From assembly GCA_047495785.1 (NCBI GenBank), contig JBLDXI010000029.1:2294001-2358000 (forward strand): DNA of 64,000 bases, read 5' to 3'. The stretch is from Lepidodermella squamata. Its lineage: Eukaryota; Animalia; Gastrotricha. This document shows, in pieces, positions 1 to 53,222 of the stretch. A program made the translations under genes and the position numbers. The notes under the pieces were generated by a model that did no database searches, was not told where the DNA came from, and saw only the letters and a list, made by a program, of their open reading frames with translations. The stretch's first letter is position 1; each line of letters opens with the position of its first letter.

Positions 1-1169
1 CTGCAATACCTGGTTGTAGCCGGGTTTCTGACCGAGAGTGAGACCAAGATCTTGGAAAATGCGACTGTGGCGAGGTACATGGTTCCGCTGGCTTGGTGCG
101 CGGCTCTGGTGAAGCGTGCCCGAATCAAGGAGAACCGAATTGATGAAGACATCGGCTACAACGCGATCGTAGAACAGATCGACAAAATTCGATCAAAATG
201 TGGAATGTGTGTGATTGAGATTTTTTTCTCGAATTTTAGCAATTTTTTATAGGCTCATCTACTACAATGCTAATCCTGTTCCACTAGCCTATATCCACGT
301 CGTTGTTTTGGCTGTGTATTCGTTTTTTACCACGGTTTGTCCATCTTAAAGAATCGAAATTTCAAGCATTTTTTTATTGAATTAGGCGGCAATGGCTGGT
401 AGCCACCGGTCTCAAACCGATGAAATTCACGATTCACTACTTCAAGGCGCATCTCTCGTTGAAATTCTATTGGTCAGGCTGTTGTCTGAGCTAATCACTC
501 TGTTGCAGTTCGCAATCTGCGCCGGGATGTTGGCCGCAACTGAATCGCTAATTTGCCCGTTCGGCAACAACGACGGCGATTTTGAAACCGACGAAATCGT
601 GAAGCGACACCTGAGCATCGCCTACCTCATCGTCGATGATATGCATTCGCTGATTCCGCAACTGTCTTCGTTGGACGACCCAAGCAGTGTTTCGAAGAGT
701 ACTGAAACTTTGGATGATAATCGCAGCCGAACTTTCATCACGATGAAGTCGGTTTCTGTTGCTAGCCGCGATCCTAGTCGTCAAGCTTCAGTCATGGTGA
801 GAACTCGTTTTTTTTATTTAATTTTTAAATTTTTTGATCTTTATTCAGCAAAATCATTCTCTCGATGACGAAGATGGCCTGGAATTGCTGTACCGTCTAT
901 CTGGAATTGAGAACCTGGGTCGCAATGGCCGAATTCGGCAGCGTTTCCTGAGGTGGTTGCGGCGGATTCCTCTCCTTCGATCCATTTTCTCATTCCGCGC
1001 CCCTCGGGACAGCTACAACCCGACTCCGGAACCGACATTTGTGCCGCTGAACCAACAGACCCAGCGACCATCAGTGCATTCGACCTCGTACCCTAACTCA
1101 AACACACCTCCCTCGTCGAACACTCCACCAACTTTGTTGCGATTGCTTAGTTTCCGTCGCATTAATTAA
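1..1169 (+). CDS. Bestrophin-family channel, copy 1 (5' end outside window)
   Basis: Spliced exons give LVVAGFLT, NPVPLAYIHVVVLAVYSFF and CPFGNNDGDFETDEIVKRH, which are bestrophin hallmarks. Ends LLSFRRIN*. Confidence 0.88.
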
Positions 1170-1448
1170 ACGCGACCTTAATTTTTTGTTTTGATTATAA
1201 ACAAATCGTGATTATTTCTGATGGACTGATTTTAAGCTAAACTCGACCGAATAAATTTGTTGCATTTTTTGAACCAGTTTCTCCCCGCTACCTAATAATT
1301 ACTTTCGAGTATAACATGGAAAACTGACGAAGTAGTAATTAGCTCCAACACGCGCACGTGAGACTACATCAGGGTGAACAAGAGCGGCAATATAACTGTC
1401 ATGTTAACATCTGAGATTTATATCTGCTACATGAAATAGTTCCAAAAC

Positions 1449-3175
1449 ATGACTATTGAGTACACTAATGCTACCCATACAGCCAGGGCTTATGGATTTC
1501 TGCGATTGCTATTCCTCTGGCGAGGGTCTGTTTACAAATTGATTGCATTTGAGCTGTTTCTATACGTCACGATCAACTTCGCAATACTTACAATATACAC
1601 ATTTGTGTTGAATGATGCGCAGAGGGAGATTTACAGTTTATTCAGCCTTAAAATCGCGAAACTACAGAGTTACCTCCTGACACCGGCTATTTTCTGCCTC
1701 GGCCTTTTCATGCAAATCTGTTACCGGCGCTTTTGGACCAATTTCCAGCAGATACCCTGGCCGAATGGCTTTGCGTTCTACGTTGCAAGCTATGTGGAAG
1801 GTCGCGACGAGAGGAGCAGGAGACTGAAGCGGACCCTTGTCAGATACGCAGTTGCATCCATCGTTTTGACCTTGACATGCGTATCGCGACGGATCTATGT
1901 TATCTTTCCCGAATTAGAGTTCATGGTAGCTGCAGGGTTCCTAACTGACGATGAAGCGGAGCTGCTGAAAGATGTGAAAACTTCGCACAGGTTAGTAACA
2001 TTAAGGAGGAATTCGTTAAAGATTTGCTCAAATTACAGGCATATGGTTGTACTATCCTGGTGTGCTTTGCTTCTGCGACATGCCCGGAAGAACTTGGGAC
2101 TGATCTCGGAAGACTATGGCTACAACGCCGTGATGGAAGAAGTCGATGCGATCCGGAACAAGTGTCGAAGGTAAATAACTTTCTAGAACCCACAGTCTAA
2201 CCTATAAGGATCTTCATAAGGTTGATCACCTTCGAGCTCGCGCCAATTCCGCTAGCTTACATCCACACCGTTGTGTTGGCCGTTTACAGCTTCTTCGGAG
2301 CTGCAGCGATTTCGTGCAGCCATCGCCAAGAGACAAAGTCTCTGCACAAAACTCTGGTTGAATCAGACCCCAGTGAACAATGGATTATCTTAATGTTCGG
2401 GGAGATAATAACCATCTTGCAATACGTGATCTGTACCGGCTTGTTGGCTGCTAGCGAGTTGCTGCTGTCGCCTTTCAGCGAGAATGAGAACGCGATTGAG
2501 ACAGATAGCATACTGAAAATTCATCTTCAAATCGGCTATCTGATGGTTGATGACTCGTTTCAATCTATGCCTGATCTAACTGGCTATAGTAGACCGCCTT
2601 CAGTAAATTTTTCGATTAGCAGCGATTCTTCTGAAGAGGAATCATCGGATGAAGATGAAGTTGCCGCCATGCCAAACAATCAACCAGCTGCGTCAGTGAT
2701 TCTGGCTTCTTTTAGACCAAGAGCGTTAACTTGGGTATAGCATTTTCTTTATTTCGTTACCGTTTGAATGTAGATGACATCAATATAGAGCATCAACGAA
2801 AGTGACGAAAGCGAAGAACAGCCCCAACAAACAGCGACAGAACAACTGATCAGGGCGAGGACATCTTCACAAGTAAGGAGAAGGTCTCTAAGCGCGAGTC
2901 GACGCAGTTCCACTACGAGCAGCGAGTCATGTTGGGAGCGTTTTATTAAGATGGTTCGGAAGTTATGCACCTTCAACCGGCAACCTGCCCAAGCGCAACA
3001 GATTCCAATGAAAACAAACTTCAAGCGGGCTTCTACGCCTCGAGGAAGCGACAGCAGTGGTCCTGTTATCAAGATTAATCATCGTCCGGATCACCTCACG
3101 GTTTCAGGTCGTCGGTATTTGAGAGCAAATAGAATGAGCTTGGACCGAATATTGACATTTAGGGAGATGAACTAA
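1449..3175 (+). CDS. Bestrophin-family channel, copy 2
   Basis: MTIEY..., LLFLWRGSVYK, IPWP, RTLVRY, PIPLAY, SPFSENENAIE. Exons approx. 1449-1990, 2039-2170, 2221-2734, 2789-3175. Confidence 0.92.
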
Positions 3176-3461
3176 CGCTGATTAAAAAATGCAATTCTTA
3201 CCGACACGTTGCTCCTTTTGTTTTGAGTTCTAATTTAAGCATTACGGTAAATGAAAGGAATATATGCTCGTGCTCAATATGGTTTACGTGTAGACCGAAA
3301 AAAACGCAACTCGTTAACCTGGAGCTTTTGATAGTTAAATTGCTACCTTTTGCCGATGAATTATTCTCACCTGGTGATAACCCTAAAAGCATGAGAGGCT
3401 CGGGTATAATTTGTTGACATTGACGGTTTCACACTTATGCAACATATTGTAGCAAGCTACA

Positions 3462-5139
3462 ATGGCTGTTAGCTACAACAAAGAGGTGCACACAGCCAGG
3501 CCATTCGGGTTCCTCCGTCTGCTGTATCGATGGCGCGGGTCTGTTTTCAAGCTGATAGTGTACGAGCTTTTCCTCTATGTCATCATTACCTTTGCCTTCC
3601 CTTTCATCTACATGTTCCTATTGGATGGAGAGCAGCAAGAAAACTTTAATTTGTTCGGGCAGTACCTTGCTAAGCTTCAAAGCTACATCTTGACGCCTGC
3701 AATCTTTTGCCTCGGTCTATTCATGCAAATTTGCTACCGGAGATACTGGAACAGCTTTCAAACTGTTCCTTGGCCTTCGGGCTTTGCGTTTTACGTTGCG
3801 AGCTACGTCGAGGGCACTAATAAGAGGAGTCGACAGATTCGCCGGACCCTTGTTCGCTACGCCGTGGCTTCTATCGTCCTTACGTTAACTTGTGTTTCGC
3901 GAAGGATGAGCATTATTTTCCCAGACTTGGACTACGTTGTAGCAGCTAAATTTCTGACTCGACAAGAGGCTGATCAGCTGGCCAACGTGAAACCTACTCA
4001 GAGGTTAGCTTAGCTGAAATTTACTGGGTACATGAAAGTAAAAACTCTATTCGCATAGGCACATGGTTGCACTGTCGTGGTGTGCTTTATTGCTCAAAAA
4101 CGCAAGAGAAAAATATGGCTTGATTGTCGAAGATCATGGCTACAATGCAGTTTTCGATCAACTCGATCAGATCAGAAATAAATGCCGAAGGTAACTTATA
4201 TTACCCGTGGACATAAACCACTTGAAATTAAGCATTTTTCCAATTCAGGCTGATCACGTTGGAATTAGCTCCGTTGCCTCTAGCTTATATCCAAACTGTC
4301 GTCCTAGCCGTTTATAGTTTCTTCATTACAGCTGCGTTAACGTGTAGCCATCGAAACGAAACATACTCCCTTCACAAAGAACTTGCAAAGGCTGATCTCA
4401 GGGAGCAGTTTTTGGTCCTAATCAGCGGCGAGCTTATAACCATTGGCCAATTTACTGTTTGCGTGGGAATGGTTGCGACCAGTCAAATGTTGCTTTCGCC
4501 ATTCGGAATGGATGACAGCGCGATTGAAACTGATAACATTTTGAAAATCCACCTTGAGATTTGCTACCTAATTGTGGATGGTATGTTCGATTCCATGCCC
4601 GATTACGCAGCTCAATCAGCTGCTCCAAGCCGGAGGCATTCGATGGCTCCGTCCTACGATGACGGAGAAGAGCCAGCATTGTTTCCTGATCATGGTGTTG
4701 GAATGGCTACATTCCGACCAAGAGCTCTGACTTGGGTAATTTGACATATCTATGACTTTTAATTTATAAGCAGGTGAAATTTTCGCAGACAATGGATGAG
4801 CTAAATGAAGATTTGGAGAGGACTGAACAACAAAGGCGTCAGTTCTCTAGGATGTCATCAGCTGGATCAACCCTTCAAGAATTGGATTTCGAGCCCTCAG
4901 AGGAGCTATCCAACTTTATGCAAAGAATGCGCCGTCGGCTTAGCTCCATGTCGAGCAACTCGAGAAGAGGATCGCTGACTAGCGTGGCACTAGAAGACTT
5001 TTCATCGCACGCTCTCAATCAACATCATCAACATACGATGCCGATCAAGAAACACGCGCATCTATCGATTCGGAAACATCGCATGAGCATTGATGGTATT
5101 AGGGCCTTCCGTGATTTGAATAAACGAGATCATCACTAG
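3462..5139 (+). CDS. Bestrophin-family channel, copy 3
   Basis: MAVSY..., RWRGSVFK, VPWP, PLPLAYIQTVVLAVYSFF, SPFGMDDSAIE. Same three intron positions as copy 2. Confidence 0.92.
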
Positions 5140-5365
5140 ATGAATTGTTCATACTTGATGACTTTTAAGCTTTTGACGCGCTTTATTTGTAGTTAATGTC
5201 ACTGCCTGCGGGCAGACTGTCGTCTCATGACTTGCATTGATGTCCTAGCAGCTTGTTTTGCTTCCTAGCCCGGGGTTATTTTTCCCCGCTGTCTTTAAAA
5301 TATATGGCAAAACGCTTCCTCATTCTAGCACAGATAAGAGCTATAACCACACCGGCTCCTCAAAA

Positions 5366-7037
5366 ATGGTTGTTGGATATAACAACGAGCTGAACTCGCT
5401 CGCGCCTTTCCGATTTTTAAGGGTTCTTTTTCGATGGCATGGGTCCGTATTCAAGCTTATCGCTTACGAGTTGTTCATATACGTCATAATCAATTTTGCC
5501 ATTCTTTTCATATACCTTTTGCTACCAGACGAGGAGCATCGAGAAAACTTCAATCTATTCGGTCAATATCTTGCCAGGCTATCTACTTATATTCTAACAC
5601 CGACAATTTTCTGCCTCGGCCTGTTCATGCAAATTTGTTACCGAAGATATTGGAACAGTTTTCAAGCAGTACCTTGGCCGACGGGTTTCGCATTCTTTGT
5701 GGCAAGTTATGTAGAAGGAGATGACGCTAGAAGTCGGAAACTACGAAGAACATTAGTTCGATACGCCGTAGCCTCTATCGTCCTAACGATGAAATGCGTA
5801 TCAAGAAGAATGAACGTCATGTTCCCAGATCTGGATTTTATTGTCGCAGCTAAATTTCTGACGCGCCAGGAAGCAGACATGCTACAGGACGTGAAAGCAA
5901 CTCAAAGGTTGGCAAAATCAAACTTATATATAGCACAAAACGAAAAATTTTCATCTGTAAAGGCATATGGTTGTATTAACTTGGTGCGGAATTTTGCTGA
6001 AGAAGGCTCGGCTGATGAACCTGATAGAAGAAGATTTCGGCTACAATGCGGTTTTTGAACAGATGGATGAAATTCGTAACAAATGTCGCAGGTGATTCTT
6101 CATGCAAAAACTCAGTGCATAATAACAATTTTTTCAAACCAGGCTCATTACTCTCGAATTGGCTCCCTTGCCGTTGGCCTATATCCACACAGTTGTTCTT
6201 GCAGTGTATAGCTTTTTTATCACAGCTGCTCTAACTTGCAGTCATCGGCAAGAGACCAACAACCTTCACAAAGACCTTGCTCTAGCAGAAATGAGTGAAC
6301 AATGGGTGGTCTTGATCGTCGGCGAACTCATTACTATTTCCCAATTCACGGTATGCGTTGGCATCGTAGCTGCCAGCCAAATGCTTCTCTCGCCGTTTGG
6401 ATCTAGCGATAGCGCAATTGAAATCGACAACATTTTGAAAATTCATCTCGAAATTTGTTATCTGATAGTTGATGGAATGACCGAGGCGATGCCAGATGTA
6501 TTAACCGACGAGAATAGATCTTCCGCTTACAACCTACACACAGAAACTAGAGATAAAGCTTTGTTTCCTCAACATGGCCAAGGAATGGCTATCTTTCGGC
6601 CGCGAGCCCTTGCTTGGGTATTGATTTTTAAAGCTAATTTGACATTTTATTATTTGTCTCATTAACAGTCAATCGACGAAGCGAATGAGGATGAAGAAAC
6701 TATCTTGGAGCTGGAAAGGGCTGCGATACTTTCGACAAAATTGTTCCGAATATCATCTGCAGGCTCTCAAATGGCTGAGCTTAATACCGAGCCTCAGGTC
6801 AAAAAGTCATTCTGTGCAAGAATTTGTCAAAGATTGAGTTCGATATGCCAACGCCGTCGAGACACAAGACCAGCTGAGACTCAAATAGCTGAGATTCCTT
6901 TGCAGCCAGTGAGCTCACTGCCCACTGATCAAAATATGCGACGGCGGCCTCCGCCGGTCCCAGTATTCAAGCACCGATCTATGCGCAAGAACCGAATAAG
7001 CATTGATGGGATAATTACATTTCGGGATCTGAACTAG
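5366..7037 (+). CDS. Bestrophin-family channel, copy 4
   Basis: ATG at 5366 (MVVGYN) aligns with paralog starts. RWHGSVFK, VPWP, PLPLAY, SPFGSSDSAIE. Ends ITFRDLN*. Confidence 0.92.
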
Positions 7038-7204
7038 AATCTCACGACTTGTGAACTTTAACGTCTGCACCAAACAATAAAGCACGATGACATCTGAATG
7101 CCGGGGCTATTAACACGCTTCAACCGTCAACAGGCAAACAGCCCGGGGCTAGCCCAATTTTGAAAACGAAATCTTTTATCATAAGCTAATTATTTATTTT
7201 GACA

Positions 7205-8785
7205 ATGACAGTTGATTACAATTCGCCATTTCACACAGCTAGATTCCTAGGCTTTCTCGGGTTGCTGTTCCGATGGAAAGGATCTGTCTTCAAAGTTATT
7301 GCTGCAGAAGTGTTCATATACACCCTGATTTACTCCACCATCTTATGCCTCTACATTTTCCTAATGACTGACGAGCAGAGGCAGCTGTACAATCTAGTCG
7401 GGGAGAAACTTGCCAGGGTATCTGGCTACGTTTTAGCGCCGGCTATTTTCTGCTTAGGATTCTTCATGCAAATTTGCCACAAACGATTTTGGACCAATTT
7501 TGAACTAATCCCATGGCCAAACGCGTTTGCGTTTTATGTATCCAGCTACATCGAAGGACATCATCCAAGAAGCGCTGAACTTAAGCGAACTCTAGTTCGA
7601 TATGCAGTCGCATCCATAGTACTGACTCTCAACTGTGTTTCGAAAAGAACCCACGACATCTTTCCAAATCTTAAATGCGTGGTTGCTGCGGGATTTCTTA
7701 CTGAGCAGGAGAGCAAGCTACTAAAATCTGCCAAGCCGTCTCATCGGTATCATGAAGGTGTCTTCTTTGATTTCTGATCTCAGTCTTTTGATTTGTAGGC
7801 ATATGGTTGTTTTGTCGTGGTGCAGTATTCTCTTGCATACCGCCCGCCACAAAGTCAGATTGATCGATGATGAACACGGTTACAACGCTGTTCAAGAGCA
7901 TCTTGACGATATCCGGAACAAATGTAGAAGGTTTTAGCTGATGGCTTATGATTACTTCAACTTGAAATTACCGACTATGTTTAGGTTGATCACTTTCGAA
8001 ATGTCCCCGCTTCCATTGGCCTACGTACAAACTGTCGTGTTGGCCGTTTACGCATTCTTCTGTATCGCCGCTGGCGCCGGAACCCATCGCATGGAAACGT
8101 CTGCTCTTTATAAGAAATTCTTAGACAACGCAGATATAACTGAGTTGTGGAATGTTGCTGTACTCGGTGAGGTAATAACCCTGCTGCAGTACGCGATTTG
8201 CACTGGGCTACTCGGCGCGAGTGAGCTCCTGCTTTCACCATTCAGCTACAGTGATAATGCTATTGAAATCGATTACATCTTAAAGCGCCATCTTCAGATT
8301 TGCTACTTCATTGTCGATGAAAAGTTCGATACGGCCCCAGAGATGGCAGATGCTGCGCTGTTTTACTCTTCGGCAGATGAAACCGATGTAAAAGTGCAGG
8401 ATGAAGAAGCCGCAGCTCCAATATCTTGGCGCCCTCGTGCTTCGACATGGGTTGGATTTCATAATAGTTTTATATCCTTTTAAATCTCTGTCTATTGCAG
8501 TCAAGATACCGTCGATCAATCGATCTTCGGTCCTCCTCGCCTGCTTTTGCCGCTTTAAGAGGCATGCTGAGATCTTATTCGAGCACAACTGGTCAGCCTG
8601 CTACAACCAACAATCGGTCATCATTGTTTCAACGTCTCCGACAGAGAATCGCTCGCCACTTACCGGGCCCATTTAGGCCACAGGAGCCGCAACCGACTCG
8701 ATCACGATCGAGGAATTCGCTGCACGGTTCCCATGGCAGTGTTGACAGAATCATCGTGTTTCGTGAACTCAACTTGACACATTAG
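7205..8785 (+). CDS. Bestrophin-family channel, copy 5
   Basis: MTVDY..., RWKGSVFK, IPWP, PLPLAYVQ, SPFSYSDNAIE. Four exons. Confidence 0.92.
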
Positions 8786-9096
8786 TAATAAAGTACGTAA
8801 AGAGCTTAGTAAACGCTATGGGACGGTGGAATAATTTAGCGAACACGAAAAAACAGTCATCGCGTCGCGCTGAAATTACTGTTTAGCTCTGGCCAGTGTA
8901 TCAATATTTTACTTCAATGGACCATTCGGACTTGTGCCGTGCACTGTGTTTGTTGTGAAAGAATAGGCCGTAAAACCGCTGACCTGGAACGAGTGAAGTC
9001 CCAACTTGTGCTTTGTCCCGCGGCTCGTGTTATAAACAATAACACCGTGCAAACACAGTTCCGCGTATTTAATCTTTTTCAGGATTAAGTAAGAAG

Positions 9097-12000
9097 ATGA
9101 CTGTCAGATACAGTGATGCTGTTGCTTCTGCGAAACCATTCCGGTTCTTTAAACTACTGCTACGATGGCGAGGCTCGTTCTACAAATTGATCGTCTACGA
9201 ATTCGCGATTTACTTCGCCATTTACATGTCCCTGAACATCATTCACTCCTTTCTGCTTAATGACGCTTATGAAAGATGGTTTTCGGAGTTTTGCACCCAG
9301 ATCGGCTTCATGTCGGGCTATGTCGTGGCCTCCGTCACTTTTTGCCTCGGCTTCTTCATCCAACAAGTCTATAAGCGATACTGCTATCAATTCTACATGG
9401 TCCCTTGGCCGGATGAATTCGCATTCTTAGTCTCCGTAAACGTCAGGGGACAGGATGTTCGAGGCAGACTCCTCAGGCGAACTATGGTAAGTTTCAATAG
9501 TAGGATTTGAATACCAACCTTAATACCCTTTATCAGGTGCGCTATGCAGTTGCATCAATAATTCTTACCTGGATGATTTTCTCGGAGCGAATGAAAGTTT
9601 TATTTCCAGACCTCGAGTCTCTCGTTGTTGCGGGGTTCCTAACGGAACACGAAATCAGCCTCCTCAAAACAGTTGAAAGGCCTCCATGGCGTCAAATGGT
9701 TGTCGTATCATGGTGTGCTGCAGTAGTAAAGCGGGCCAGAATGGAGAATCGAATCGAAGATGACTTCGCTTATGACGCCGTTTTTACAGCATTGGACAAG
9801 CTCCGAATGAGGGCGAGAAAGTGAGTCCTATTGCCTCCGAATCCTCATTAAATTCAAGGTGATTTTCATATAGGCTTATCCAGCAAAATAACAGGCCTGT
9901 TCAATTGGCCTACGTCCAAACTGTTATAATCGGAGTATTCTCGTTCTTTGTCATGGCAGCAATTGCTGGTAGCCACCGTCTTCAAACCCAGTCTCTTCAC
10001 AAGAAATTTTTAGATGAAAGCAGCCCTGGCGACATTTGGATTCTGCGACTGCTATCACAAGCCGTTACGCTGCTACAATTCGCGATCTGCGCCGGGGTTT
10101 TGGCGATAAGTCGATCACTGCTGATGCCTTTCGGTAAAGATGACTGCAGCATCAATGTAGAAGATATCGTTCGCCGGCACTTGTCGCTGTCTTATCTGAT
10201 TGTGGACGAGCTTCACTGGTACATACCGGAGATGGGTGATGGACTGATAGGCAGTGCAGCGGGTTCAATTTATCAGCGGTCAGATGCCGGCTCTCCAGAC
10301 CCAGCGCATTGGCATCCAACGCTCGAGGTAAACGGAAGCCTTAAAAATCATAAATGTCTTAAAAATGTCTCCGATTTGGGCTCCTTTTATGTTATATCCT
10401 TACATTCTTATATAATCTGGGCTGCAGAAAAAACAATTAATCACTCGATATATTGAAAAATGTTTTGCAGTTTTTCCCTCAGGCTCCTGGTTGGGGTTTT
10501 GCTTCAGACTTTTTATCTATAGAAAGTCTTCTCCCAGAAATTCTGAAAATCAAAGAATAGATTTGGCGAATCAATTAGTCCCAATTAGGTTCCGCTTCCT
10601 GCCAAACTAGCTTCGAAAATTTTGAAAATGGAACTGAGATATTGTTGAAATTTGGCTACGCTAAAAGTTATTCTGTGTTCATTTTAGATTTTTTGAATTT
10701 AAATACAGCGTGTCCCATGAGTTGGGAAACTCTTTCCTAAGTTCTGGCATGAAATTCATATTCTTTCTGTAACTGAGCCTGGTGGGAGCATCCTTCACCT
10801 TTTATCTGCGATATACCTACCGGAAATTGTCTAATTTACCGGAGAATACCCGGTAAACCCGATGGTAAAATTGGTTTGGTAATTTCGGTATTTCACCCGT
10901 GGTGACCCGATTCCTCCGTATTATTTTTGTCCCACTGTAAACGCGTCATACCTAATTAGAGGACCCCGCCCTAATTTCGGCCACTTTTCAGGTTTTCCTA
11001 CTTTGCCAGCCAGTTGAATTTTTAGAAAATATTCGGCAAAAGCAAAATTAAAGACGAGTTCTTAGGCTATCGAATGCCGCTTTCCGCAAGTCCGTACGAT
11101 TTTACCTTGATTTATGGCTAATTTTTTAGTCACCCAGACACCCGGCCGGAATTATGAAGCGGGGTGCCCTAATTTCGGCCACCTCATCCAGGTACACTAA
11201 TACCATAAGTTTGGTATCGTTAGATTCGTCTCAAAAAGCTGACTATAAAAACCGCTTTTGTTGCTTCACCTGTGAGCTTATCCTTGACGACGTGATGCCT
11301 GAAACTCAAACTTGTTTTGACAGGTACAAGTTTGATAGCTTGTTTTCAACTGCGGTTGACTTTCTAAAATTCTGGAAAAATATCTAAAAAATCCCTTGCC
11401 TCCTGTAGAATGAGAGTATCGATTTTGTTTCCCCGAATTCAATTCCACTATTGACTGCTAATTTTTGGAATCGAACCCTCGAAAACACTAAAATTGCCCA
11501 TCTAGATCTCTTCACCTCGGCGGTTTTAGATAGAATTTTTTATACCAAAATGAAGCTGGCGTTTAGCTGGTAATTATTGAGGTGAAAGCAGTAAATTGTA
11601 AAGATCCAGTTTCAGCTAAATTATACCTGCAAAGTAGCGGTAACAGAGCACTCGAGAAGCGACATAAGCCCGCTCGCTCGCATTTAGAATTATTTTTTGC
11701 GATCACGTGCTTGAAAAATCATGAAACAGATGGGCTCAACAATGCAAATTTCTTGAATTGCATGCAAATAAAACTGCTGCACAGCACTTCGTGCCCAAAT
11801 TTCGGCCGGCGGCCGAAGTTAGGACGCAGCGGCCGAATTTAGGAAGTGGCCGGAATTAGGGCGGGGTCCTCTATTTTTCTCATGGCATTTTGGAATTTTT
11901 CTGACCATGTGGGATGATACATCGTGTCCCAAAATTCGCGCAACTATTTTTTTATTTGGCAAATTTTTTTAGGAAATTAAACTAATTGTTTCAAATTAAA

Positions 12001-12687
12001 CCTACCGAAAGATTATTCCTTTTTATCAGCGATTTAACCGAAGAAATTACAAATTTACCGGAGAAAACCTGAAAAATCCCGGTTATTCGGTAATTTTCGG
12101 TATTTTACCCGGTTGGACCATGTTTCTCCGGAATTTTTTAACGACTTTAGCAAGTGACTTTCTGGATTACCATTCTCGTTGATTTTTCTTAAATTCTTCT
12201 GACCATGAAATAAGACTTCGCATCTCATTTTAGAGTTTCCAAACCCTTTTCCGTTCATTTTATATGCTTTCTAACTTACTTATGGATTTCTTATTTACTT
12301 ATGGGACACGCTGTATTTTAGAATTTACGATCCCTCGTCGCTTGCATTTCCTTCATCCTCGACCTTTCGCGTAAAAATCCCGGTGTTGACTTTTCGGTTT
12401 TTAAAATAATTTTTCTTAATTTGAAGCTGAAAAAAATATTTTTTCTCATTATTTTCAATTAGGTACCCTCTCGGATGAGCCTTAGTCAGTACGATCACCA
12501 AGAATTTGGCCGGCCGGGCTACATTCTATCTGTCGCCCCGAAGAAAGGCGACGCGCCTAGCACATCAGCCGCCGAAGCGCAGGTCAAATTCACGCATGGC
12601 CGCAAACAATCGAAAGTCCTGCGGCTGCTAAGTTTCCGCAAACTCAACAGACAAACGCTTCATAAGGAAGATTTCCCGCATTTGTGA
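9097..12687 (+). CDS. Bestrophin-family channel, copy 6
   Basis: MTVRYS..., RWRGSFYK, VPWPD, MPFGKDDCSIN. Last exon (~12463-12687, LLSFRKLN) lies beyond a 2.1-kb transposon-filled intron. Confidence 0.9.
10706..12313. mobile_element. Non-autonomous TIR DNA transposon (Tc1/mariner-like) in the last intron of bestrophin 6
   Basis: TA|CAGCGTGTCCCATGAGT ... ACTTATGGGACACGCTG|TA: near-perfect terminal inverted repeats with TA duplication. No transposase ORF. Related internal sequence at ~19890-19990 and ~27720-27840. Confidence 0.8.
10959..11871. mobile_element. Second TIR element nested inside the first
   Basis: TA|GAGGACCCCGCCCTAATTTCGGCCACTT ... AAGTGGCCGGAATTAGGGCGGGGTCCTC|TA: ~28-bp inverted repeats with TA duplication. 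Confidence 0.82.
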
Positions 12688-14216
12688 CATTTTTGTCATT
12701 ATAAATAACCCGAGGCATTCAATAAAACATGGTCATCGTTTTATATAATCGATTTTGAGCGGGTTTATTTGACTGGCGAAGACGTCTATAACACGCGTCG
12801 TTTTATCTCTTATAACGAATGCTAAAAGCCACGCCAAGCTAAGTAAACAAAAGTGCGGTCTACAACAACCGAAAACAACAAACGTCTATAGTGATATATA
12901 TCACGGCCAGATAGCAATAAATGTATAATGCTGTGTTTTTGGCCCATGCTCGTTTCTTTTATACCTGTGCCAGTGGCCGAAAGCTATGAATGGTACAGCT
13001 GTGCGAATGAGCCTTCGTGGTAATATTACTGCTTTTCGTAGTAGTGGGCCGTGTGTAATAATCGGAGTGCTTCACTATGCTGACGTATAAAAAGAGTTGT
13101 GGCTACGTGATATCAGTTGTAATAAAAATGGCCGATATGGACTAACGACCTATTTCTTCATGATTTCGCACTTCCTTATAGCAATTTCTTGCCGCACTGT
13201 TCGTGCATAAATTATTCAATAGCCGGTGGTGATTTTTTTTTTGAAAATTCTGCTGACTTTTTCTTTTACATTGTACGGCAATTTGTTTTAGGAGTCAGCA
13301 TTTTTATGCATTTTCTCTACACACATAAATTCGCACGTGCCAGTTGATTTATACGCGATAGCAAAAAAACTCACAGCAATCTGAGAGCAGAGGAAAATGG
13401 CAAAACAAAATCTTCTCGAGTTTTCCCTTCTTTATTTTTCAGGTTTTAACGTTAAATTTATCGTAGAAGTAACTCGTTTATATTATTTGACTTTTTCGGC
13501 TGGCGATTAATTACGCAGCCATACATTGCCTTTAATTACTTACAGGATTAATTGTTTACTAGAAAATCGATTGAGTCATCTATAACTGGCCTTAATATAG
13601 ATTCTTTCTTTCAATTACGAATATTAGGAATTTCGGCTGGATTTCCTCAATTACCTTTAATTAACCTCTACGATGAAAGGCTAAATCTTTTGTCGCTAAA
13701 TTAGAATGTTACAGCTAGGTACCCATTTGAATTTTAAAAAATTATTCAAAAATCACAGCTTCAATAAAATTTGTCGATTTTGTTCGCTCGATTTTGAAAT
13801 GAGAACATCAAAAATCCTTGATCTGCACTCCTGGTCTCTAGAATTTTACTGCTTTTTGCAAGCGGTGCAAGCGGAAAAATTTCACGGAGAATAAATTCGT
13901 CACGTGAAAGACTCAAAAAGTTGTTAGTTCAATTAGGTAACAGTTCGCTGTAATTTTTTTTAACACACGGTTATAACAGACCGGGCTTTTTTAATCTGCC
14001 TAAACTTTCTCATTGTTTCTAAACCTCAGCTCGAGCGTAGAAAATTATCTTTATTTTACACATAAATTATCCCGACTCGACTGACGAAACTTTTTGCCTT
14101 TTAACCTGGAATTTTTTTTATCGGTTTCCAGTTACTAAATTGAAGCTTAATTTTTCCGCATCGATTTTGCCTGTATTTTCCATAATTTTCAATAGATAAA
14201 TGTGAATCCTTAAAAA

Positions 14217-15804
14217 ATGACAGTTTCGTACAGCGAGGATGTGGCTTATGCCACGCCATTCAGATTCGTTCGACTGCTATTTCGCTGGCATGGTTCGGTT
14301 TACAAGCTCATCGTCTACGAATTCAGTATTTATTTCGCTGTTTACATGGTAAATAAATATTTAAAAATTATCACCGGCTGATTTTTCGGGAATTTTTCTT
14401 AATTAGATGATGAATATCGTGCATTCTTTCATCCTGACCCCGGAACAAGAAGAGCTGTTCTCCAACGTCTGCGCTCAGTTGGGTCGAATGTCCGGCTACG
14501 TTGTTGCTTCTCTAGTCTTTTGCCTCGGTTTCTTCATCCAACAAGTTTGGCGGCGATTTTGCTTTCATTTCAACGTTGTCCCATGGCCGGATGGCTTCGC
14601 TTTCCTCGTATCAGTCAACGTCCGAGGCCACGATATGCACGGCAGACTGCTGAGACGGACAATGGCAAGTAAATTTGACAAATTAAATGATTTATTTTAT
14701 TTTAAGGTAATTCTAGGTCCGATATGCTGTTGCTTCAATCATTCTTACCTGGATGAACTTCTCAGAACGGATGAAGGTTCTCTTTCCGAATCTGGATGCC
14801 CTAGTCATGGCTGGATTTCTAACCGAAAACGAGGCTCAAATGCTGACAACTGTTGCGAGACCTCCTTGGAGGTTAGTTTCATTCCCAAAAGTTCGGTGGA
14901 TTTTTTTCAATTTCCGGAATTTAGGCAAATGGTGGCAGCATCCTGGTGTGCCGCAGTAGTGAAGCGAGCCAGAATGGAAAATCGAATCGAAGATGATTTT
15001 GCTTACAACGCAATCATCCGAGAATTAGACACCATACGTATGAGGTGTCGCCGGTAGGTCCTCACCTAATTATCCGCGCTTCTCTGTTAACAATTTGATC
15101 TTTACAGCTTGATTTCTCAGAACAATCGACCTACTCCACTAGCTCATCTTCACATTGTCATTATCGGCGTGTATTCGTTCTTCTCGATCGCGGCTGTTGC
15201 GGGTAGTCACCGCCTTCAAACTCAGAATATCCATCTAGAACTGATTGGCGATGAAGCCGGCGATATCTGGATGCTTCGCCTGTTGTCCCAAGTCATCACC
15301 ATGCTTCAGTTTTCGATTTGCGCCGGAGTTCTGGCGATTAGTCGCGCGCTAATCATGCCGTTTGGGAAGGACGATTGCAATATTGATGTCGAAGAGATTG
15401 TCAAGCGGCACTTGTCTGTTGCTTATCTGATCGTTGACGAGTTGCATTCGCTGATTCCGGAACTTGAGGACGCTCCCGATGCTGATATTGACAACTCCGA
15501 TATTGCTGACGAACCCTTCGAAATGCCTTTCATCAGGGTTTTTATTTGTCGAATGACAATTTTCTTTATACTCATGAATTCGATTTTTCAGAGACGTCTG
15601 AGCCGACGCCATAGCAAGATGTCAAACGAAGGCAGGCAGCACGAGAAGTTGGGCTTTCTCTTGTCGGTTGCTCCGAAGAAGGATAAGGGTTCAACATCGG
15701 AATCGAGCAGCCAGCCGGATGTTACTGCGGCTCGGGATCGTTTCCTAAAAGAACGAAGTGAATCGAAACTTGAACGACTGATGGACTTCCGAAAACTGAA
15801 CTAA
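14217..15804 (+). CDS. Bestrophin-family channel, copy 7
   Basis: MTVSYSED..., RWHGSVYK, VPWPD, MPFGKDDCNID. Ends MDFRKLN*. Closest to copy 6. Includes a GC-AG intron (14665-14716). Confidence 0.9.
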
Positions 15805-15916
15805 TCCTAATCATGCGCAGAACCTATTTTGATACTATTTAGCTGAGCTGAATAAAAGAATACCCATATCAGGAAGGGCTTATGATTTATTTACACGATA
15901 GGACAAGAAATAAGGT

Positions 15917-17821
15917 TTAGCGATTTGGCTCAGGTAACTTTTTCGCACTCTTGTACCATGCGTCGAACTGCCAGTCGGACATCATGAAATTGCGTCTGAT
16001 ATTCCTGGAGTTGTACTTGCTTATAAAAACAGCTTTTGCTGTCTTCACGATCCGTTCTGAAGACGGCCATATCGGCGAATTGATGTAGCTGTAATAGTCA
16101 TCCTCGTCGCCTTTGTCATCCTCGAACTGATCCTCCTCAGCATCAGGCAGATTAATTAGGCCAACTTTGAAGCCTGGAATGCAGTGGGCGATAAAGCTAG
16201 CCACTCTCACCACGTAAACCTGCTCGACCATAAGAAAAATTTCGACTCGCTTACGGCAGCGCCAAGTGTTCTCCGTCATCGTTGCTTTAAGACCGACTTC
16301 AATGCTAGCTGGGACGTCGTAATCTTTGGTAGCTATTGCCACAGAGTCCAGCTTTATTTCAACATCGCCCGAGTCACCCTCGACGTCGGCATCCACATCA
16401 TGAATTTGAACAGATTTTTCCTTCTTTACGGAATTCCAGCCATACTGGCCGGCATAAGTGCACGCGATTTTGACCTTGAGAATAGGACTGCCTTGATAGA
16501 TAAACACCCGTTCCGGATTGATGAGATGAGGTCGATCTGTCTCGTAAGATTGACAACTTGTGAAATAATATCTGCTCGCATCGAAGTAGGAAAACGACCT
16601 GATAACTACACCTGAAGCTTGAGATTTACACCGAAAAACAGTGAAAGGGAAATCTGAATCCTCATCCACGACAATCAGTGCTGGCTTCGGATAGCTGATC
16701 TCCCGCAACTGCACTGTCTTCGGTAAGGTTGACGCGCTTTTGTAGGTATTGCTTTTCTCGTCCAACCACTCCCAGTCGACCCGCCCCGAGCCAATGAAGT
16801 CATGAAGCAGATACGGGCACATCAGGCGCATGGGTGAATGCTTGATTTTCACACTACTAACTTGCATTCGACTCCACTCGAGCACAGGTATCAATTCGTG
16901 GTTTCCAAACATAATACCTGGCTCTCCGCAATCCCACCAGCGATCGCTGTCAAGAGGCAAGCATTGGTAGGAGTCATCGACCAGACGCACCCTGCATATT
17001 CTCGGTGCGCGCAACGCGCATGTGCTATGCGCATCGCAGTTTTTAAATAATCGCGTTGCCATGCATAATTTTAATGCACTATAATCATCATAACGGTCAA
17101 AAATTTTAACCGAAGTCTCGTAGCTTCCCGAAATAATAGCTGCCTCAAGTTTCTTGTCTGTATCACCTGCCGGCTTCACTCCGACTTCGAAGCTGTCCAG
17201 TATAAGCTGATCGCTACCTTTGAACGTAGCCTTCACTCCAGTTTGATAACGTTGTTTATAAAACCCAAAATATCGCTGCCAATCATATGTAGGGTCAAAC
17301 ATTGAAGAATTCCAAACCAAAATGATTTTTTCGCCCTGAGATTTTCGCGCTATTTGATCGATGAAAAGAACTGAGAACGCCCGAGCATCTGTTAGAGGTG
17401 GATTTCTTCCATATACAAAAGGATGCCATTTTCCGAAAAAATCCGGAGATTCTGGCCGGATTACGTCAGTGAGAACCTCCCCTTCAGAATTATCTGTCAA
17501 TTTGAAAGAACGTATTGAAAGCTCAATATCGATAGGGGCACGGTCGAAATCATCAGTATCCTTATATGGATAGTGCAAATAGTTCAAACGGATTTTCACG
17601 ATGTAATCGAATTTTCCAGGTGGGTGCGCGATGATAAGCGCCGCGATGCCGTTACCGCCTCGATACAAGGAAACTTTTTTAGGCTCTTCCTGGCTATTTA
17701 CAACCCATGATTGTTCACCGTTGTGTGGCTTCTGATATGCTTTCATCCAATCGATGTCGTTGCTACAGCAGAAACCGGCTAAAAGAGAAGCAACCGCCAG
17801 GAGAAGCAAAAATCGCGCCAT
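15917..17821 (-). CDS. Intronless secreted protein of unknown function (634 aa) with a Cys-rich module and a probable Ig-like domain
   Basis: Long uninterrupted ORF with signal peptide MARFLLLLAVASLLAGFCCS. LMCP...VDWEW...ALIV...FRC spacing resembles an Ig fold. AATAAA downstream on the - strand (~15886-15891). Confidence 0.8.
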   Translation of the reverse strand: MARFLLLLAVASLLAGFCCSNDIDWMKAYQKPHNGEQSWVVNSQEEPKKVSLYRGGNGIAALIIAHPPGKFDYIVKIRLNYLHYPYKDTDDFDRAPIDIELSIRSFKLTDNSEGEVLTDVIRPESPDFFGKWHPFVYGRNPPLTDARAFSVLFIDQIARKSQGEKIILVWNSSMFDPTYDWQRYFGFYKQRYQTGVKATFKGSDQLILDSFEVGVKPAGDTDKKLEAAIISGSYETSVKIFDRYDDYSALKLCMATRLFKNCDAHSTCALRAPRICRVRLVDDSYQCLPLDSDRWWDCGEPGIMFGNHELIPVLEWSRMQVSSVKIKHSPMRLMCPYLLHDFIGSGRVDWEWLDEKSNTYKSASTLPKTVQLREISYPKPALIVVDEDSDFPFTVFRCKSQASGVVIRSFSYFDASRYYFTSCQSYETDRPHLINPERVFIYQGSPILKVKIACTYAGQYGWNSVKKEKSVQIHDVDADVEGDSGDVEIKLDSVAIATKDYDVPASIEVGLKATMTENTWRCRKRVEIFLMVEQVYVVRVASFIAHCIPGFKVGLINLPDAEEDQFEDDKGDEDDYYSYINSPIWPSSERIVKTAKAVFISKYNSRNIRRNFMMSDWQFDAWYKSAKKLPEPNR

Positions 17822-18107
17822 TTTCGAAGGATGAAATTTGTAAAAAACATTCTGCTTTTAATCATTTTCATTAAGGTGGGCTTTTTACAAATCTGCGTTT
17901 TGCTGCTTTGTGTATTTTGATTTTCCTCATTTATTTTCGTCTTTCGAGCCGAGCCTTTATGCTGTGAACTAGGCCATGGCCAGCACGCGCCAAATTATTA
18001 GTAGCCATGTTAGCGCGCGTGCCCTTTTTTATTACTACAATGCACTGCTAAAACAGCCGAGCTCGCACTTTTGGTTTGCACTTGTGCCTGCTTTCACTTT
18101 TAATCTT

Positions 18108-20397
18108 ATGACGGTTAATTACAGCGGTGAAGTCGCAACAGCACGGCCATTCGGTTTCGTTCGCCTGCTCTTCAGATGGCGCGGCTCATTTTACAAGCTC
18201 ATCCTCCTTCAATTCGCGTTTTACTTCATCGTCTACAACACCCTGAATTTGGTTTACATCTTCGCCCTGGATGACACCCAACGCGATACTTACGATAAAG
18301 TTGGCAAGCAGTTTGGCCGACTTTCAGGCTACATTGTCGGCCCGGTGATTTTCTGCCTCGGCTTCTTCATCCAACAAGTCTATAAACGATTTTGCGACCA
18401 TTTCTACGACGTTCCATGGCCTGATGCCTTAGCATTCCTGATTTCAGGTAAAAAATTCAGCCGTTATAATTGAAGGCGAAAATTATCAATTTTTATTAGC
18501 GAATGTGCGAGGTCATGACGCGAAAAGTCGACAACTTCGTCGAACAATGATCCGTTACGCCGTGGCGTCGATCGTCCTAGCGTTGATGAGTGTTTCCGAG
18601 CGAATGCAAGCCATTTTCCCGACCCTCGATCTCGTCGTTATCGCTGGCTTTCTTCGCGAAGAAGAAGCCCTAATTTTGAAGGATATCAAGCCAACCTCGC
18701 GGCACATGATCGTCCTCAGCTGGTGTGCGGTTCTATTCCGGAAGGCTCGGTTGAATAAACAAATTCAGGACGAATTCGGCTATAACGCGATTGTTGACGA
18801 GCTGGATAACATTCGATTTAAATGTCGAAGGTACCATGAATTTTTTATAATTTTTCTAAAATAATTTTTCAAATTTTAGACTGCTTTTTTACGACTGGGT
18901 GTCGATTCCTTTGTCCTACATTCAAACTCTACTACTCGGCTTGAGTAGTTTCTTCATGGCAGCTGCTGTTTCTAGCATATATCGCTTAGAAGCTCAAGTC
19001 GTGAAATTTACTTCAGATCCGAAAATTGAATTGGAAGACCAGCACGCGAGCCACGATCACAATCAATGGCCTGTTCGGTTGCTAGCTGAAGCAATCACCC
19101 TGCTGCAATTCACGATCTGCGCCGGAATGTCAGCGGCCAGTCAAAGCCTCATCCGGCCGTTCTCGACAAATGACGGCAATATCGATGTGGATCAAATTGT
19201 TAAACGCCACCTGTTTATTGCGTATATCATCGTCGATGATTTGCATAACATACTGCCGGAGTTGAATGACAGCCAGAGCGAGTCGTTTCGAAGAACTGCG
19301 AATGACATGTCAATCGATGATTTGGTCGGCGTTGGTGGCATCGAATTTGCAGCTTATCAACAAGCGAGGGGGTCGATTTTTTCTCACAGGGTAAGGAAAA
19401 AATTGTTTCACGAAAACCCTAGTTTTCTTGATTTTTATTAATTTTAAATCTTATTAGAAAAATTGTGCCAAATTTCCAAAATTTGAGGATTGTGACATTT
19501 TTAAGATCTTAGAAGCTGCCGGCATTCGATTCAACCAAAATATGACGTTTCAAGTTACTAGTTCTCCCTATCAATTTTTTCTATCGATTTCTACGCGAAT
19601 TTTGCGAATAGCCGATAGCCAATCGCCGATATCGATTTTAATTATCGATTTTGAAAATCAGCGATTTTTTCCAATAGCAGCAGTCCTGAAAGCCATATCA
19701 CACCTTTTTCATACACCTGAGGTAATAAAAAATCCCAGGGTGTCCCAAAATGTGTTCATAACTGTTTCGAATTTCGCGGTATTTTGTTACTAATTATACC
19801 AATTTATCAAATTTCTTACAAATTAAACCTAAAATAAACACCCCGTATCGGGTTCATAAGCCGAAAAATTCGAAATATACCTTCAAGAAATCCCGGAAAA
19901 ACGCGATGGTAACTGATTCGGGATTTTTCGGTTTTTTCGGTATTTTACCCGTTTTGACCAAATTTCTCCGGGATTATTTATCCCCATTGAAAATTTTCCT
20001 ATTTGATTATCATTCTAATGCGTTTTTCTCGTTACGGACATTTTCCTTGCCACGAAAAGGAAAAATTTAGATCCTCCTAACTATATTTTTCTAAATAATC
20101 TAAGCTTATTTAAATATTTTTCTTGTTTTACAGCCTAGTCGAGATCTTGCCGACCTTCGCGAAAAAGGCATTTTATTTCAAATTGGGGCGCAAGACGATC
20201 AAGATGCTTGGCGATGGATACGAAACATTCCTCTAATCAAGTCTATCATTCCCGAAAGACGGCGAAGTTCAGTCTCATCTTCGACTTCTAGTATCAGTGA
20301 ACTCCCTGATTCAATGTCTTCCCGGCGGCCTAGAACTTACACTGTTGAAAGTAAATCAGCTCTGCATAAAGTTCTCAGCTTCAGACGGCTCAACTAA
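18108..20397 (+). CDS. Bestrophin-family channel, copy 8
   Basis: MTVNYSGEVATARPFG, RWRGSFYK, YDWVSIPLSYIQ (canonical YDW), RPFSTNDGNID. Last exon ~20134-20397 (not in ORF track) ends VLSFRRLN*. Confidence 0.9.
19628..19725. repeat. Dispersed intronic repeat family (core GATATCGATTT..TATCGATTTT.GAAATCAGTGATTTTT)
   Basis: Similar copies at ~27560, ~38788 and ~55008; inverted copies at ~23410-23490 and ~37255. Confidence 0.65.
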
Positions 20398-20716: not shown

Positions 20717-23700
20717 CTATTCAATCTCCCATTTCGGTGTTTCCGGACCTTGGAAGGTGTCTGAAAAAATTGAAAAATTGAAATTAATTAAATATCTCAA
20801 ATCAAATAAATGTCGAACTTACTTGGCAAACACCAGCCTAATAAAACATATCGCGAACTCTTCTTAATCATTAACTGCCATGTTAACACAGGGAAGGGTT
20901 GCTTCAGGACAACAGGCGATGGCTAGGGGGGGAAAATTGATAACAATTCGAAAATTAAAAATTTCGAAAATAATTACCTCGAAATTGATGAAGACGAAGC
21001 TGGGCAGTTTCAGGTAGAAATCGAATTTGAAGAACATGTCGTCGTTGCCGTGATACAGATAGAAACAGCCCGATGGTACCGACATTTGCGTGTCCAGGTA
21101 ATAATTCAGGTACAGCGTCGCCAATGAACCGAGACCGAAGAACTAAAAAAATTGGAAAAATTAAACAAATCGAAGAATTTTAATTTTAGGCTTTAAAATA
21201 AAGTTCATGCCATTTTTGAATTTCATATCTAATTAATGTTCAATTTAGATTTAGATTTTTTAAATTTCAAATTTCAAATTCAATTAAATTTAAAAGAATT
21301 TATAATTAAATTCAAGGCAAATTTGGAATAAATTATTCTAAGACTTACGTCATTTTCCAGTTCCGCATAAGCATCGGCTTCGACGATAGTAATCGGCCTG
21401 AATCGAATTCCCATGGCGCCATCGGGACCACAGAACGACGGCCACAGGGTCAAATTGAAGCGAATATCAAAATCAGCATTCATCAGAAAGGCGAATCCGC
21501 CGAAGTTCACACGAAACGCCGGCGTTGTGTACTGCCAACCGTACGTCCAATCATTGATAGTCAAATTACACGCGTATTGAACCTCGTGGAGGTAGACGTT
21601 GGACAAAGCTCGGAGTAACACGTGGCCCTGGAACCCCTTCTGAGTCTGCTCGCGCAGAAATTGAACGACAGCGATTTCCATTTGAACAATCAAGCGAACA
21701 CCCATCCAGGCGCGGCCGAATAGCTTCGACTCGCCACGGTCGTTGCGTCCGGCGAAGAAGCCAGCCTTCAACCCACCGCTGAGTAGCGTGGCTTTGAATT
21801 CGGCCCGGAATAAACAGTGCCGCTTCTGCGCACTGAAATGATTCGCGTCATTGTCGAATTCGATGGGATTTTCGTAGATTTCCGTGTAATTAACCCCGAC
21901 GACACTGTTCCAATTATCGCAGTCGACCTCAGGCGTGAAAACGAACCCGGATAACCCGCCGGCTAGACCGCCACCCAACCCGGCTAGCGGGTTAGCCCCC
22001 GCCGCCATATCGTCACGCCTTTTCCGGACCAAGCCATGCGTGAAGGCTAGAGAGGTCGCGTTCAACTGCGGGGCCGGTTCTTCCAGCTCAGTCTCGTCGA
22101 TGCCATTCCCGCGTTCCTGGAGATAAGTCAACAGGTAGCTATACCACTCCCTTCCCTTTTTCTTAACCAGGTACCGCGCGATCGGTTGCTTGTTACACGC
22201 GAACGCCCCGGTGAAACCCGGCGCCTCCAGCCATTCGGTTAGGATGAAGCCGTCGACCTCTGGCACGGTGCCAAATCGCGGCCACTGCCTCGCCGCGCCG
22301 CCCTTCGACCCCGCCAGTTCAACGGCGACAACCAGCGCATCGACGAGGCCGCCTCGCATCGAACACGGCGTGTCGGGCGCGCGCAACGCCTCGGCCACAG
22401 CCGAACGCACCGACGCGGAACCGAGGCAATTACGCAGCGAATTCAACGCCTCAACCGACAACTCGCTGGTCCGGCAATTTTTCACGATTTTCGTCAAAAT
22501 CTCCAGTAGCTTCACCGCCGGTCCGCCGAGTTGTTCGACTCGTTCCAGGTTCAAAAAATTCGCGATCGACTCGAGGAAGATTTTGTAGACGTCCTTCGAA
22601 GCCGGGCACGTGACTAGAGGCTCAATCATGTGTTGAAACCACTCAATCACTCGAATTTTCGTCTCATTCGAAATCTGGTCGGTGTCTTTTGAAATTAAAC
22701 TGCTAATAGCGAGCGATAAATGGTGTTCGGTTATCGACATCGAGTCGCTGGACGGCAGCATAGCCAGCATGGCGCTGACCAGCCGGTCGGTCGGGTATTC
22801 CAGCTGAATCATGATGTTGAGAAATTGCGGCCGGAAGCTCGATTCCATCAAATCGGTGTCGTTCAGTAAATTCGCGAATAAATTGTCGATTTCAAAGCCG
22901 TAACCGCTTGATAAGATGTAGAGCATTTTCAGGGTGACATCCCACTGCTGGGACGCGGCGCTGTCGTGCAGTTTCGCGGTTACTAAAGGCAAGATTTTTC
23001 GGAGTAGCGGCTGGTCTTGCCGCTTTTCGGATAGAATGTGCATTTTCGATTCGAGGCCGATTATGCTGCGGAGCAGGTTGGCTTCTTTCATGGCGGTGTG
23101 AGGCGAAAGAGCTACGGCGTCGACCAGGCCGGGAATGCCACCGTCCCGTTTCGCGATTTGGTCCAACTTCTTGGTCAGGATTTTCGATATCAAATCGGCT
23201 GGAACAGAAAAAAAATCAATCAAATTTATACTGAGATCAAGAAAATAAATCCGAAGGTCAACATTCAATTACGAGGAATTTTTGGAAATTTCTGGAGCCC
23301 CAGCCTAATGACTAAGGAAGAGTAAATTTTCAGATATTTCAACAATTTTTCAAGACTCGAAAATTTCTTGTTCGATCTCGAAATTTTCAATTTTTGCTTC
23401 TAAAATTTCAGATATCGGAAAAATCACTAAGATTTTAGATATCGGAAAAATCACTGATTTGTACAATCGATATCGGAAATCAATAATTTCGGAAATTCGC
23501 TCAAAATCAAAATTTGCCGGACGTTCTATTCTCCATTTCTAATGGATTTTTGAGAATACTTACAATTGTCGTACTCCTGGCTGGTAAAGTTGACACTGCT
23601 CAATCTGGCATACTCCTTGCTGACCTCCACCACTTCCTTATCGGTACCAACAGGTGTCGGCTCCGAAGTCATCGCCAAGGTGTAAGTGACTTCAACGCTG

Positions 23701-53064: not shown

Positions 53065-53222
53065 CATTATAACGGTGCTCTACTTACATGACACTGAAAA
53101 CTACCGCTGCTTCCTTGTTGCATATTTATGATGATATATCACCTGCCATTTGCTTGCTATTATACCTACCAAAGAGCTATTTTTCTTCAATTCCGTTGAT
53201 GTTTTATAGGTTTTATTTGAAC

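Follow-up and report, generated by a model that had tools for sequence, protein, structure and literature searches.

A tandem array of eight bestrophin genes

We examined a 64,000-nucleotide (nt) stretch of the genome of the gastrotrich Lepidodermella squamata (GenBank assembly GCA_047495785.1, contig JBLDXI010000029.1, positions 2,294,001 to 2,358,000 of the forward strand), referred to here as the window and numbered from its first letter. This compact animal DNA, with a G+C content of 42%, encodes a tandem array of bestrophins in which no copy retains both ligand aspartates of the calcium clasp. A six-frame scan, which picks up bestrophin N termini as well as the altered clasp strings, together with Pfam family PF01062 and tblastn, places exactly eight bestrophin genes in the window, all on the plus strand and within positions 1-20397. 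An earlier account made from the letters alone (the sequence-only reading) had described an array of eight or more; since tblastn with all copies against both strands of the 64 kb finds no additional bestrophin fragment, the number can be fixed at eight. Matches to PF01062 have E values from 5e-52 to 1e-9, exon pieces of copies 2, 3, 6, and 8 score 38-177 bits against a gathering cutoff of 24.2, and the remaining copies (1, 4, 5, and 7) align with these throughout.

The gene models combine open segments with GT-AG sites and homology, and the introns of all copies but copy 3 are homology-guided predictions. The reading frames of all eight copies (c1 to c8) are open once short introns of 46-58 nt are spliced out. 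Only the final introns of c6 and c8 are longer, at 2135 and 743 nt, respectively, and the exons behind them were assigned by homology. The earlier claim that all frames are intact holds for the spliced genes with these reservations and two more: the start of the window truncates c1, and the open frame of c7 depends on a GC-AG intron. The seven complete copies comprise 438-524 codons, and an AATAAA or ATTAAA lies ~10-80 nt from the stop in seven of the eight genes (all except c3).

Copy 1 (1-1169) is represented by the 3′ two-thirds of the gene, with 339 amino acids (aa) visible, its 5′ part beyond the window start, and predicted introns at 207-252, 335-385, and 797-848. It is followed by c2 (1449-3175; 524 aa; predicted introns 1991-2038, 2171-2220, and 2735-2788), c3 (3462-5139; 503 aa; introns 4004-4058, 4191-4248, and 4736-4788, confirmed by spliced RNA contigs), c4 (5366-7037; 504 aa; predicted introns 5908-5962, 6092-6142, and 6618-6668), c5 (7205-8785; 474 aa; predicted introns 7747-7798, 7931-7984, and 8451-8500), c6 (9097-12687; 450 aa; predicted introns 9487-9536, 9821-9873, and 10328-12462), c7 (14217-15804; 438 aa; five predicted introns), and c8 (18108-20397; 481 aa; predicted introns 18448-18499, 18831-18879, and 19391-20133). 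The predicted GC-AG intron of c7 (14665-14716) reads GCAAGT...TTCTAG, where c6 has GTAAGT, and the nearest GT donor in c7 would shift the frame. A dispersed repeat common to the last introns of c6 and c8 (70-84% identity) recurs at 27630-27852, and the c6 intron holds 33-nt inverted copies at 10954-10986 and 11844-11876; the repeat and its inverted copies look like small transposon debris.

Changes in the calcium clasp and at other conserved positions

In BEST1, D301 and D304 bind Ca2+ through their side chains, and A10, Q293, and N296 contribute backbone carbonyls (PMC8496536); this clasp is described as conserved among metazoans (PMC6342527). In human BEST1, the substitutions E300Q, D301N, D302N, D303L, and D304N leave trafficking normal and the channels non-functional, and D312G reduces the affinity for Ca2+ by a factor of about twenty (PMC2585866); chicken BEST1 W287F is nearly Ca2+ insensitive (PMC6342527).

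All eight clasp strings quoted in the sequence-only reading were recovered on the plus strand. A HMMER alignment to the solved human and chicken BEST1 chains, spanning residues 1-173 and 227-332, maps them onto human N296-E306 (NPFGEDDDDFE): CPFGNNDGDFE in c1 (554-586), SPFSENENAIE in c2 (2468-2500), SPFGMDDSAIE in c3 (4496-4528), SPFGSSDSAIE in c4 (6390-6422), SPFSYSDNAIE in c5 (8235-8267), MPFGKDDCSIN in c6 (10124-10156), MPFGKDDCNID in c7 (15355-15387), and RPFSTNDGNID in c8 (19154-19186). P297 and F298 are unchanged in all copies, the PF dipeptide beginning at 557, 2471, 4499, 6393, 8238, 10127, 15358, and 19157 in c1 to c8, and residues 300-304 read, in the same order, NNDGD, ENENA, MDDSA, SSDSA, YSDNA, KDDCS, KDDCN, and TNDGN. 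D301 and D304 occur together in none of the eight: D304 is retained by c1 and D301 by c3, c6, and c7, and c2-c5 have alanine at 304.

We searched 1.84 billion cluster representatives by HMMER with the first 240 residues of c2 and inspected the best 150 of the 932 matches; individual residues were compared with 112-127 other bestrophin representatives. Among these best 150, every representative with a complete clasp region keeps D301 and D304 if it lies outside the clade formed by the eight copies and the metagenomic genes described below; in the set of about 120 full-length representatives from the nearest animal bestrophin clusters, the pair is missing in this clade alone. Several named representatives appeared to lack the clasp (the ostracod Notodromas, Caenorhabditis auriculariae, Paragonimus, and others) and were rejected because their gene models are truncated or chimeric; in Paragonimus, the full-length protein has both aspartates. 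The single Caenorhabditis representative inspected, P0128, is a truncated model in which W287 is kept.

The clasp did not change alone. Across the clade, N296 is replaced by S, T, M, C, or R, D312 by K, R, or Q, and W287, which couples the clasp to the neck, by L, M, I, or V in all members, Y284 becomes C and P274 becomes E, and E300 and D303 are counted as lost (with the c2 string at 300-304 being ENENA). At the top of the neck, position 76 is occupied by I or V in 112 of 127 canonical representatives; the clade has T, A, G, or S in place of I76, and c2-c8 one of the first three. F80 is conserved in all copies and G83 throughout the clade, and F84 persists in c5-c8 and gives way to L in c2-c4, so that the neck reads T76/F80/L84 in c2, T/F/L in c3, and A/F/F in c5. 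The I76/F80/F84 hydrophobic neck of the BEST1-4 type is thus not present as a whole. The earlier statement that the RFP motif has become (I/M/L)FP in copies 2-8 is correct (IFP, IFP, MFP, IFP, LFP, LFP, and IFP, with F and P kept; the corresponding part of c1 lies outside the window). Over the whole clade its arginine is I, M, L, or F in all members except P0004, compared with R in 114 of 127 other representatives, and the RFP otherwise taken as invariant in the bestrophin family is not preserved.

A clade shared with a second species

In the c2 scan, six proteins alone, fragments among them, score above the canonical bestrophins: P0001 (47% identical), P0002, P0003, P0004, P0005, and P0013. 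With the exception of P0003, they are encoded on metagenome contigs from a single organism, a relative that carries six clade genes, five in tandem and one elsewhere (bestrophin loci L001, 1-7678; L004, 4404-8711; L006, 9017-10311). The bestrophins of its array are almost intronless, and the array runs FA-hydroxylase, Best462, Best450, Best398, a split gene, and Best422, followed by unrelated genes. The relative's strings at 300-304 are likewise degenerate (TNDNA, THDNA, NDDNN, RDDCN, RDDSN, and PHDGD).

In a maximum-likelihood tree, the eight copies together with the relative's genes are set apart by a branch whose Shimodaira-Hasegawa-like approximate likelihood ratio test (SH-aLRT) value is 99. 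Sub-clade A comprises c2-c5 with P0001 and P0156 (SH-aLRT 99) and sub-clade B comprises c1, c6, c7, and c8 with P0002 (SH-aLRT 85), and both contain genes of both species. The split gene on L001 is 62-65% identical to c6 and c7 in its N-terminal half and 43-47% in its C-terminal half, and its intron has the position of one in c7. Because each sub-clade holds genes of both species and an intron is shared in position, the clasp was lost in one ancestral event before the two species split, not in eight events; the array gained members in each line after the split. The alignment and the tree bear out the sequence-only reading in its view of an expanded, distinct subfamily without the canonical Ca2+ ligands. 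Its statement that the copies have all lost the clasp is corrected in one respect, the clasp strings and the tree pointing to a single ancestral change shared with the second species.

Apart from the bestrophins, the window and the relative's contigs have no genes in common. Word-indexed protein searches with P0001 and with the clade alignment recovered no named relatives, three metagenomic proteins being the sole matches, and a scan of Joint Genome Institute (JGI) metagenome contigs gave a single locus, a canonical bestrophin with NPFGDDDEDFE, and no new clade member. The ESM Atlas look-up yielded generic bestrophin clusters only, and our literature search found no account of an animal bestrophin clade without the acidic cluster.

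Selection and expression

The copies are 35-66% identical overall, with c3 and c4 reaching 77% in the channel domain. The synonymous substitution rate (dS) is saturated for every copy pair, leaving pairwise ratios of nonsynonymous to synonymous rates (dN/dS) unusable as a measure of selection; dN itself is 0.16-0.38 in the domain and 0.6-1.6 in the C-terminal tail. The dN/dS comparison proposed in the sequence-only reading was therefore not properly computable, and we used haplotype variants instead. In the DNA run X2, positions 1400-7100 are represented by two haplotypes of about equal depth that are several percent apart in intergenic DNA (e.g., 5145-5301) and that differ inside the bestrophin channel domains almost solely at third codon positions. 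Counted from the 40 of 101 variants listed, the second haplotype differs in the channel domains of c3 and c4 by 9 synonymous and 0 nonsynonymous variants and in the tails by 8 and 5, respectively. The low dN and this 9-to-0 count show that strong purifying selection acts on the channel domain, and the copies are therefore not pseudogenes.

Contigs of a public run were compared with the same interval, 1400-7100, which holds c2-c4. Over c3 they are identical to the window minus its three introns, removed exactly at GT..AG, which identifies the run as RNA and c3 as transcribed and spliced; c4 is covered by contigs and c2 partly so. The genes are intact, selectively maintained, and at least partly expressed.

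Fold, C-terminal tail, and outer loop

As a structural model we used the AlphaFold2 (AF2) monomer of the relative's P0001, which shares 47% identity with c2 across the first 240 aa. The model has a mean predicted local distance difference test (pLDDT) score of 81, rising above 90 over most of the domain and standing at ~88-92 in the clasp loop. It matches human BEST1 and BEST2 with a TM-score (TMt) of 0.85-0.87, a probability of 1.00, and 28% identity, and the bacterial KpBest with a TM-score of 0.6-0.79 and 13% identity. On this model, the bestrophin protomer fold of four transmembrane (TM) helices and a helical cytosolic domain is present, and the fold and the channel-domain signature are retained.

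The C-terminal tails are long, disordered, and dense in basic-serine clusters of the RRxS type, and none gives a Pfam family match. An RP(S/R) motif lies near the position of the BEST1 inactivation peptide, reading FRPRALTW in c2-c4 and HRPSRD in c8; in BEST1 that peptide is RPSFLGS, with S358 as a phospho-switch (PMC6219684). W229, the receptor tryptophan for the inactivation peptide, is retained within the clade only in c8 and P0013, and c8 has both the D-W pair of the receptor (YDWVSIP) and the HRPS motif. All eight proteins end in a peptide RxS[LIV]xx[IL]xxFRx[LMI]N, encoded by the last 16 codons (e.g., 3125-3172, 5075-5124, and 6987-7034) and finishing in SFRRIN in c1, TFREMN in c2, and DFRKLN in c7. 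The relative's orthologue of c6 and c7 has it as well (SYRKMN), P0001 and P0156 have a looser form, and none of 150 other bestrophin representatives carries it, making it a candidate regulatory or sorting signal. On the outer side, the TM3-TM4 loop is ~10 residues longer than in BEST1 and includes a clade-specific (S/T)HRxx(T/S)xx(L/I)(H/Y).

Interpretation and alternatives

The array represents an old, lineage-restricted clade, and we favor, with moderate confidence, the reading that its eight paralogues form pentameric anion channels that Ca2+ no longer activates directly and that are regulated by way of their tails. One ancestral remodelling took out elements through which, in BEST1-4, cytosolic Ca2+ acts on the neck gate. 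The proteins would still form pentameric anion pores, and direct activation by nanomolar Ca2+ would be lost or much weakened. With the hydrophobic neck weakened, the barrier to opening may be lower, and control may have moved to the long C-terminal tail. Given the tail features and the weakened neck, the expected outcome would be either constitutive activity or tail gating switched by phosphorylation, in which case any effect of Ca2+ would be indirect and exerted by kinases. Paralogues that probably differ in tissue or regulation would then have arisen by tandem duplication. Altered channel control is thus a probable consequence of the lost calcium-switch residues. The sequence-only reading had further suggested heteropentamers, a sensory repertoire, or gating by ligand, pH, or osmolarity, ideas that are without support in the present data.

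Several observations weigh against this reading and feed its main rival, in which the clasp is weakened and not lost. Here different ligands (D302, a remaining aspartate, Asn or Ser side chains, and the backbone carbonyls) would give lower-affinity Ca2+ activation, at least in sub-clade B. The PF-G/S loop is kept in all members, and residue 302 is acidic in every one, being Asp in 7 of 8 copies (14 of 15 tabulated clade rows) and Glu in c2. One of the two ligand aspartates survives in c1, c3, c6, and c7, and Asn or Ser stands at the other ligand site in c1, c6, c7, and c8; side chains of this kind are able to coordinate Ca2+ in sites resembling EF hands, and weak Ca2+ binding is possible because of these residues together with the acidic 302. 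Conservation extends to the N-terminal segment from which the A10 carbonyl comes, sequence gives no verdict on the three backbone-carbonyl ligands, and the P0001 clasp loop is modelled with good local confidence, although AF2 confidence may merely mirror the canonical sequences in its alignment. Against the weakened clasp stand the alanine at 304 throughout sub-clade A, the loss of function caused in human BEST1 by D301N or D304N singly (PMC2585866), and, elsewhere in the region, the charge reversal of D312 and the changes counted as losses at E300, D303, and N296. We consider retained low-affinity activation possible, above all in sub-clade B, and on balance unlikely.

The remaining points on the opposing side concern other parts of the favored reading. 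Leu likewise stands at 287 in 18 canonical DDDED-type representatives with the clasp intact, so the W287 change alone is not diagnostic. Single clasp mutations in a BEST1 background give dead channels, not open ones (PMC2585866). The splicing evidence is for c3 only, with c2 (partly) and c4 merely covered by contigs, and motif conservation is all that speaks for the tail and phosphorylation idea. Since the best 150 of 932 matches were inspected, further clasp-less animal lineages may exist, for example among the 26 Caenorhabditis elegans paralogues.

A more far-reaching version, which we put forward as doubtful, holds that clasp, coupler, and neck top were dismantled together in favor of a new gating mode. 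The new sensor would be either a proton, metal, or ligand site in the outer loop or a phospho-switched terminal peptide, and the paralogues would be differently tuned or heteromeric channels. In its outer-loop form the candidate sensor would be the extracellular, lengthened TM3-TM4 loop with its His- and Arg-bearing (S/T)HRxx(T/S).

That the copies are non-autonomous subunits, modulatory or dominant-negative and co-assembling among themselves or with a canonical bestrophin from another place in the genome, seems improbable. Eight diverged paralogues lie side by side, and single changes in E300-D304 of human BEST1 give non-functional channels (PMC2585866), both of which would suit such a role; the pore-lining F80 and G83 and the entire domain are nevertheless strongly conserved, as for a working pore, and the clade persists in two species. 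Decay of the array, with relaxed copies turning into pseudogenes, might be suspected from the non-canonical GC-AG intron that c7 requires, the repeat insertions in the long last introns of c6 and c8, and the fast tails, and is very improbable in view of eight open frames (438-524 codons in the seven complete copies) kept despite 35-66% identity, domain dN far under the saturated dS, no nonsynonymous change against 9 synonymous ones among the domain variants listed, spliced c3 RNA, orthologues retained in a second species, and a window free of bestrophin fragments.

Relation to known bestrophins

The reading of channels uncoupled from Ca2+ can be set against several known systems. With vertebrate BEST1-4 (4RDQ, 8D1I, and 6VX5) the copies share the Pfam family, the helical fold, the N-terminal MT-x-Y, F80 and G83, the PF-G loop that follows TM4, D323, and a long disordered tail in which a motif resembling RP-S occurs. 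They differ from them in lacking a complete D301/D304 pair, in the loss of N296, E300, D303, and D312, in an aliphatic residue at 287, in a small or polar residue at 76, in L84 in c2-c4, in I/M/L-FP, in the longer outer loop, and in the C-terminal FRx(L/M/I)N. Drosophila dBest1 offers a shared theme, being an invertebrate bestrophin that cell swelling can open without Ca2+, but it differs in being Ca2+ activated as well (PMC2151665); its swelling activation means that animal bestrophins have Ca2+-independent gating routes.

KpBest from Klebsiella and plant VCCN1 are bestrophin-fold pentamers without the clasp that are not Ca2+ gated (PMC8496536, PMC9076864), a likeness that the present copies may share. 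Both are far more distant, however, with 13% identity, lower TM-scores, and a different Pfam family (Bestrophin_2, not PF01062); KpBest is in addition cation selective, and VCCN1 has an N-terminal extension and a short C terminus. The 26 paralogues of C. elegans, best-1 to best-26 (PMC2292144, PMC12799128), form a large lineage-specific expansion in a small invertebrate; the likeness is one of expansion, and the nematode event is independent and in another phylum. Clasp-less bestrophins in bacteria and plants, the nematode expansion, and Ca2+-independent opening were thus already known, and what appears new is an animal clade without the clasp.

The bestrophin field explains gating, and many BEST1 disease mutations, by the clasp. 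In the present clade the clasp ligands, D312, W287, and I76 were lost together while the rest of the protein stayed constrained in two species, which amounts to a natural experiment on Ca2+-free neck gating. The clade points to compensating changes that may make a clasp-less animal bestrophin viable where single changes kill human BEST1, and its C-terminal peptide and outer loop are candidate control elements. The importance of the finding is limited because the host is obscure and clasp-less homologues are already known outside animals.

Other features of the window

The array is interrupted between c7 and c8 by an unrelated minus-strand gene (15917-17821). Its 634-aa open frame starts much like a signal peptide, does not encode a bestrophin, and has no match in Pfam. 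Beyond the array, large paralogous open frames occur at 21280-23268 (minus), 26135-28699 (minus), 33710-35767 (plus), and 36513-38610 (minus). The one member of this family examined against Pfam (21280-23268) has no match there, and the family members have in common hydrophobic stretches rich in Gly and a motif similar to WPS(F/Y)CG.DG...AYAELENDV. Farther along, two intronless tandem paralogues of glyoxylate/hydroxypyruvate reductase (GRHPR) are encoded on the plus strand at 52012-53064 and 53088-54206, with a best named match that is 47% identical.

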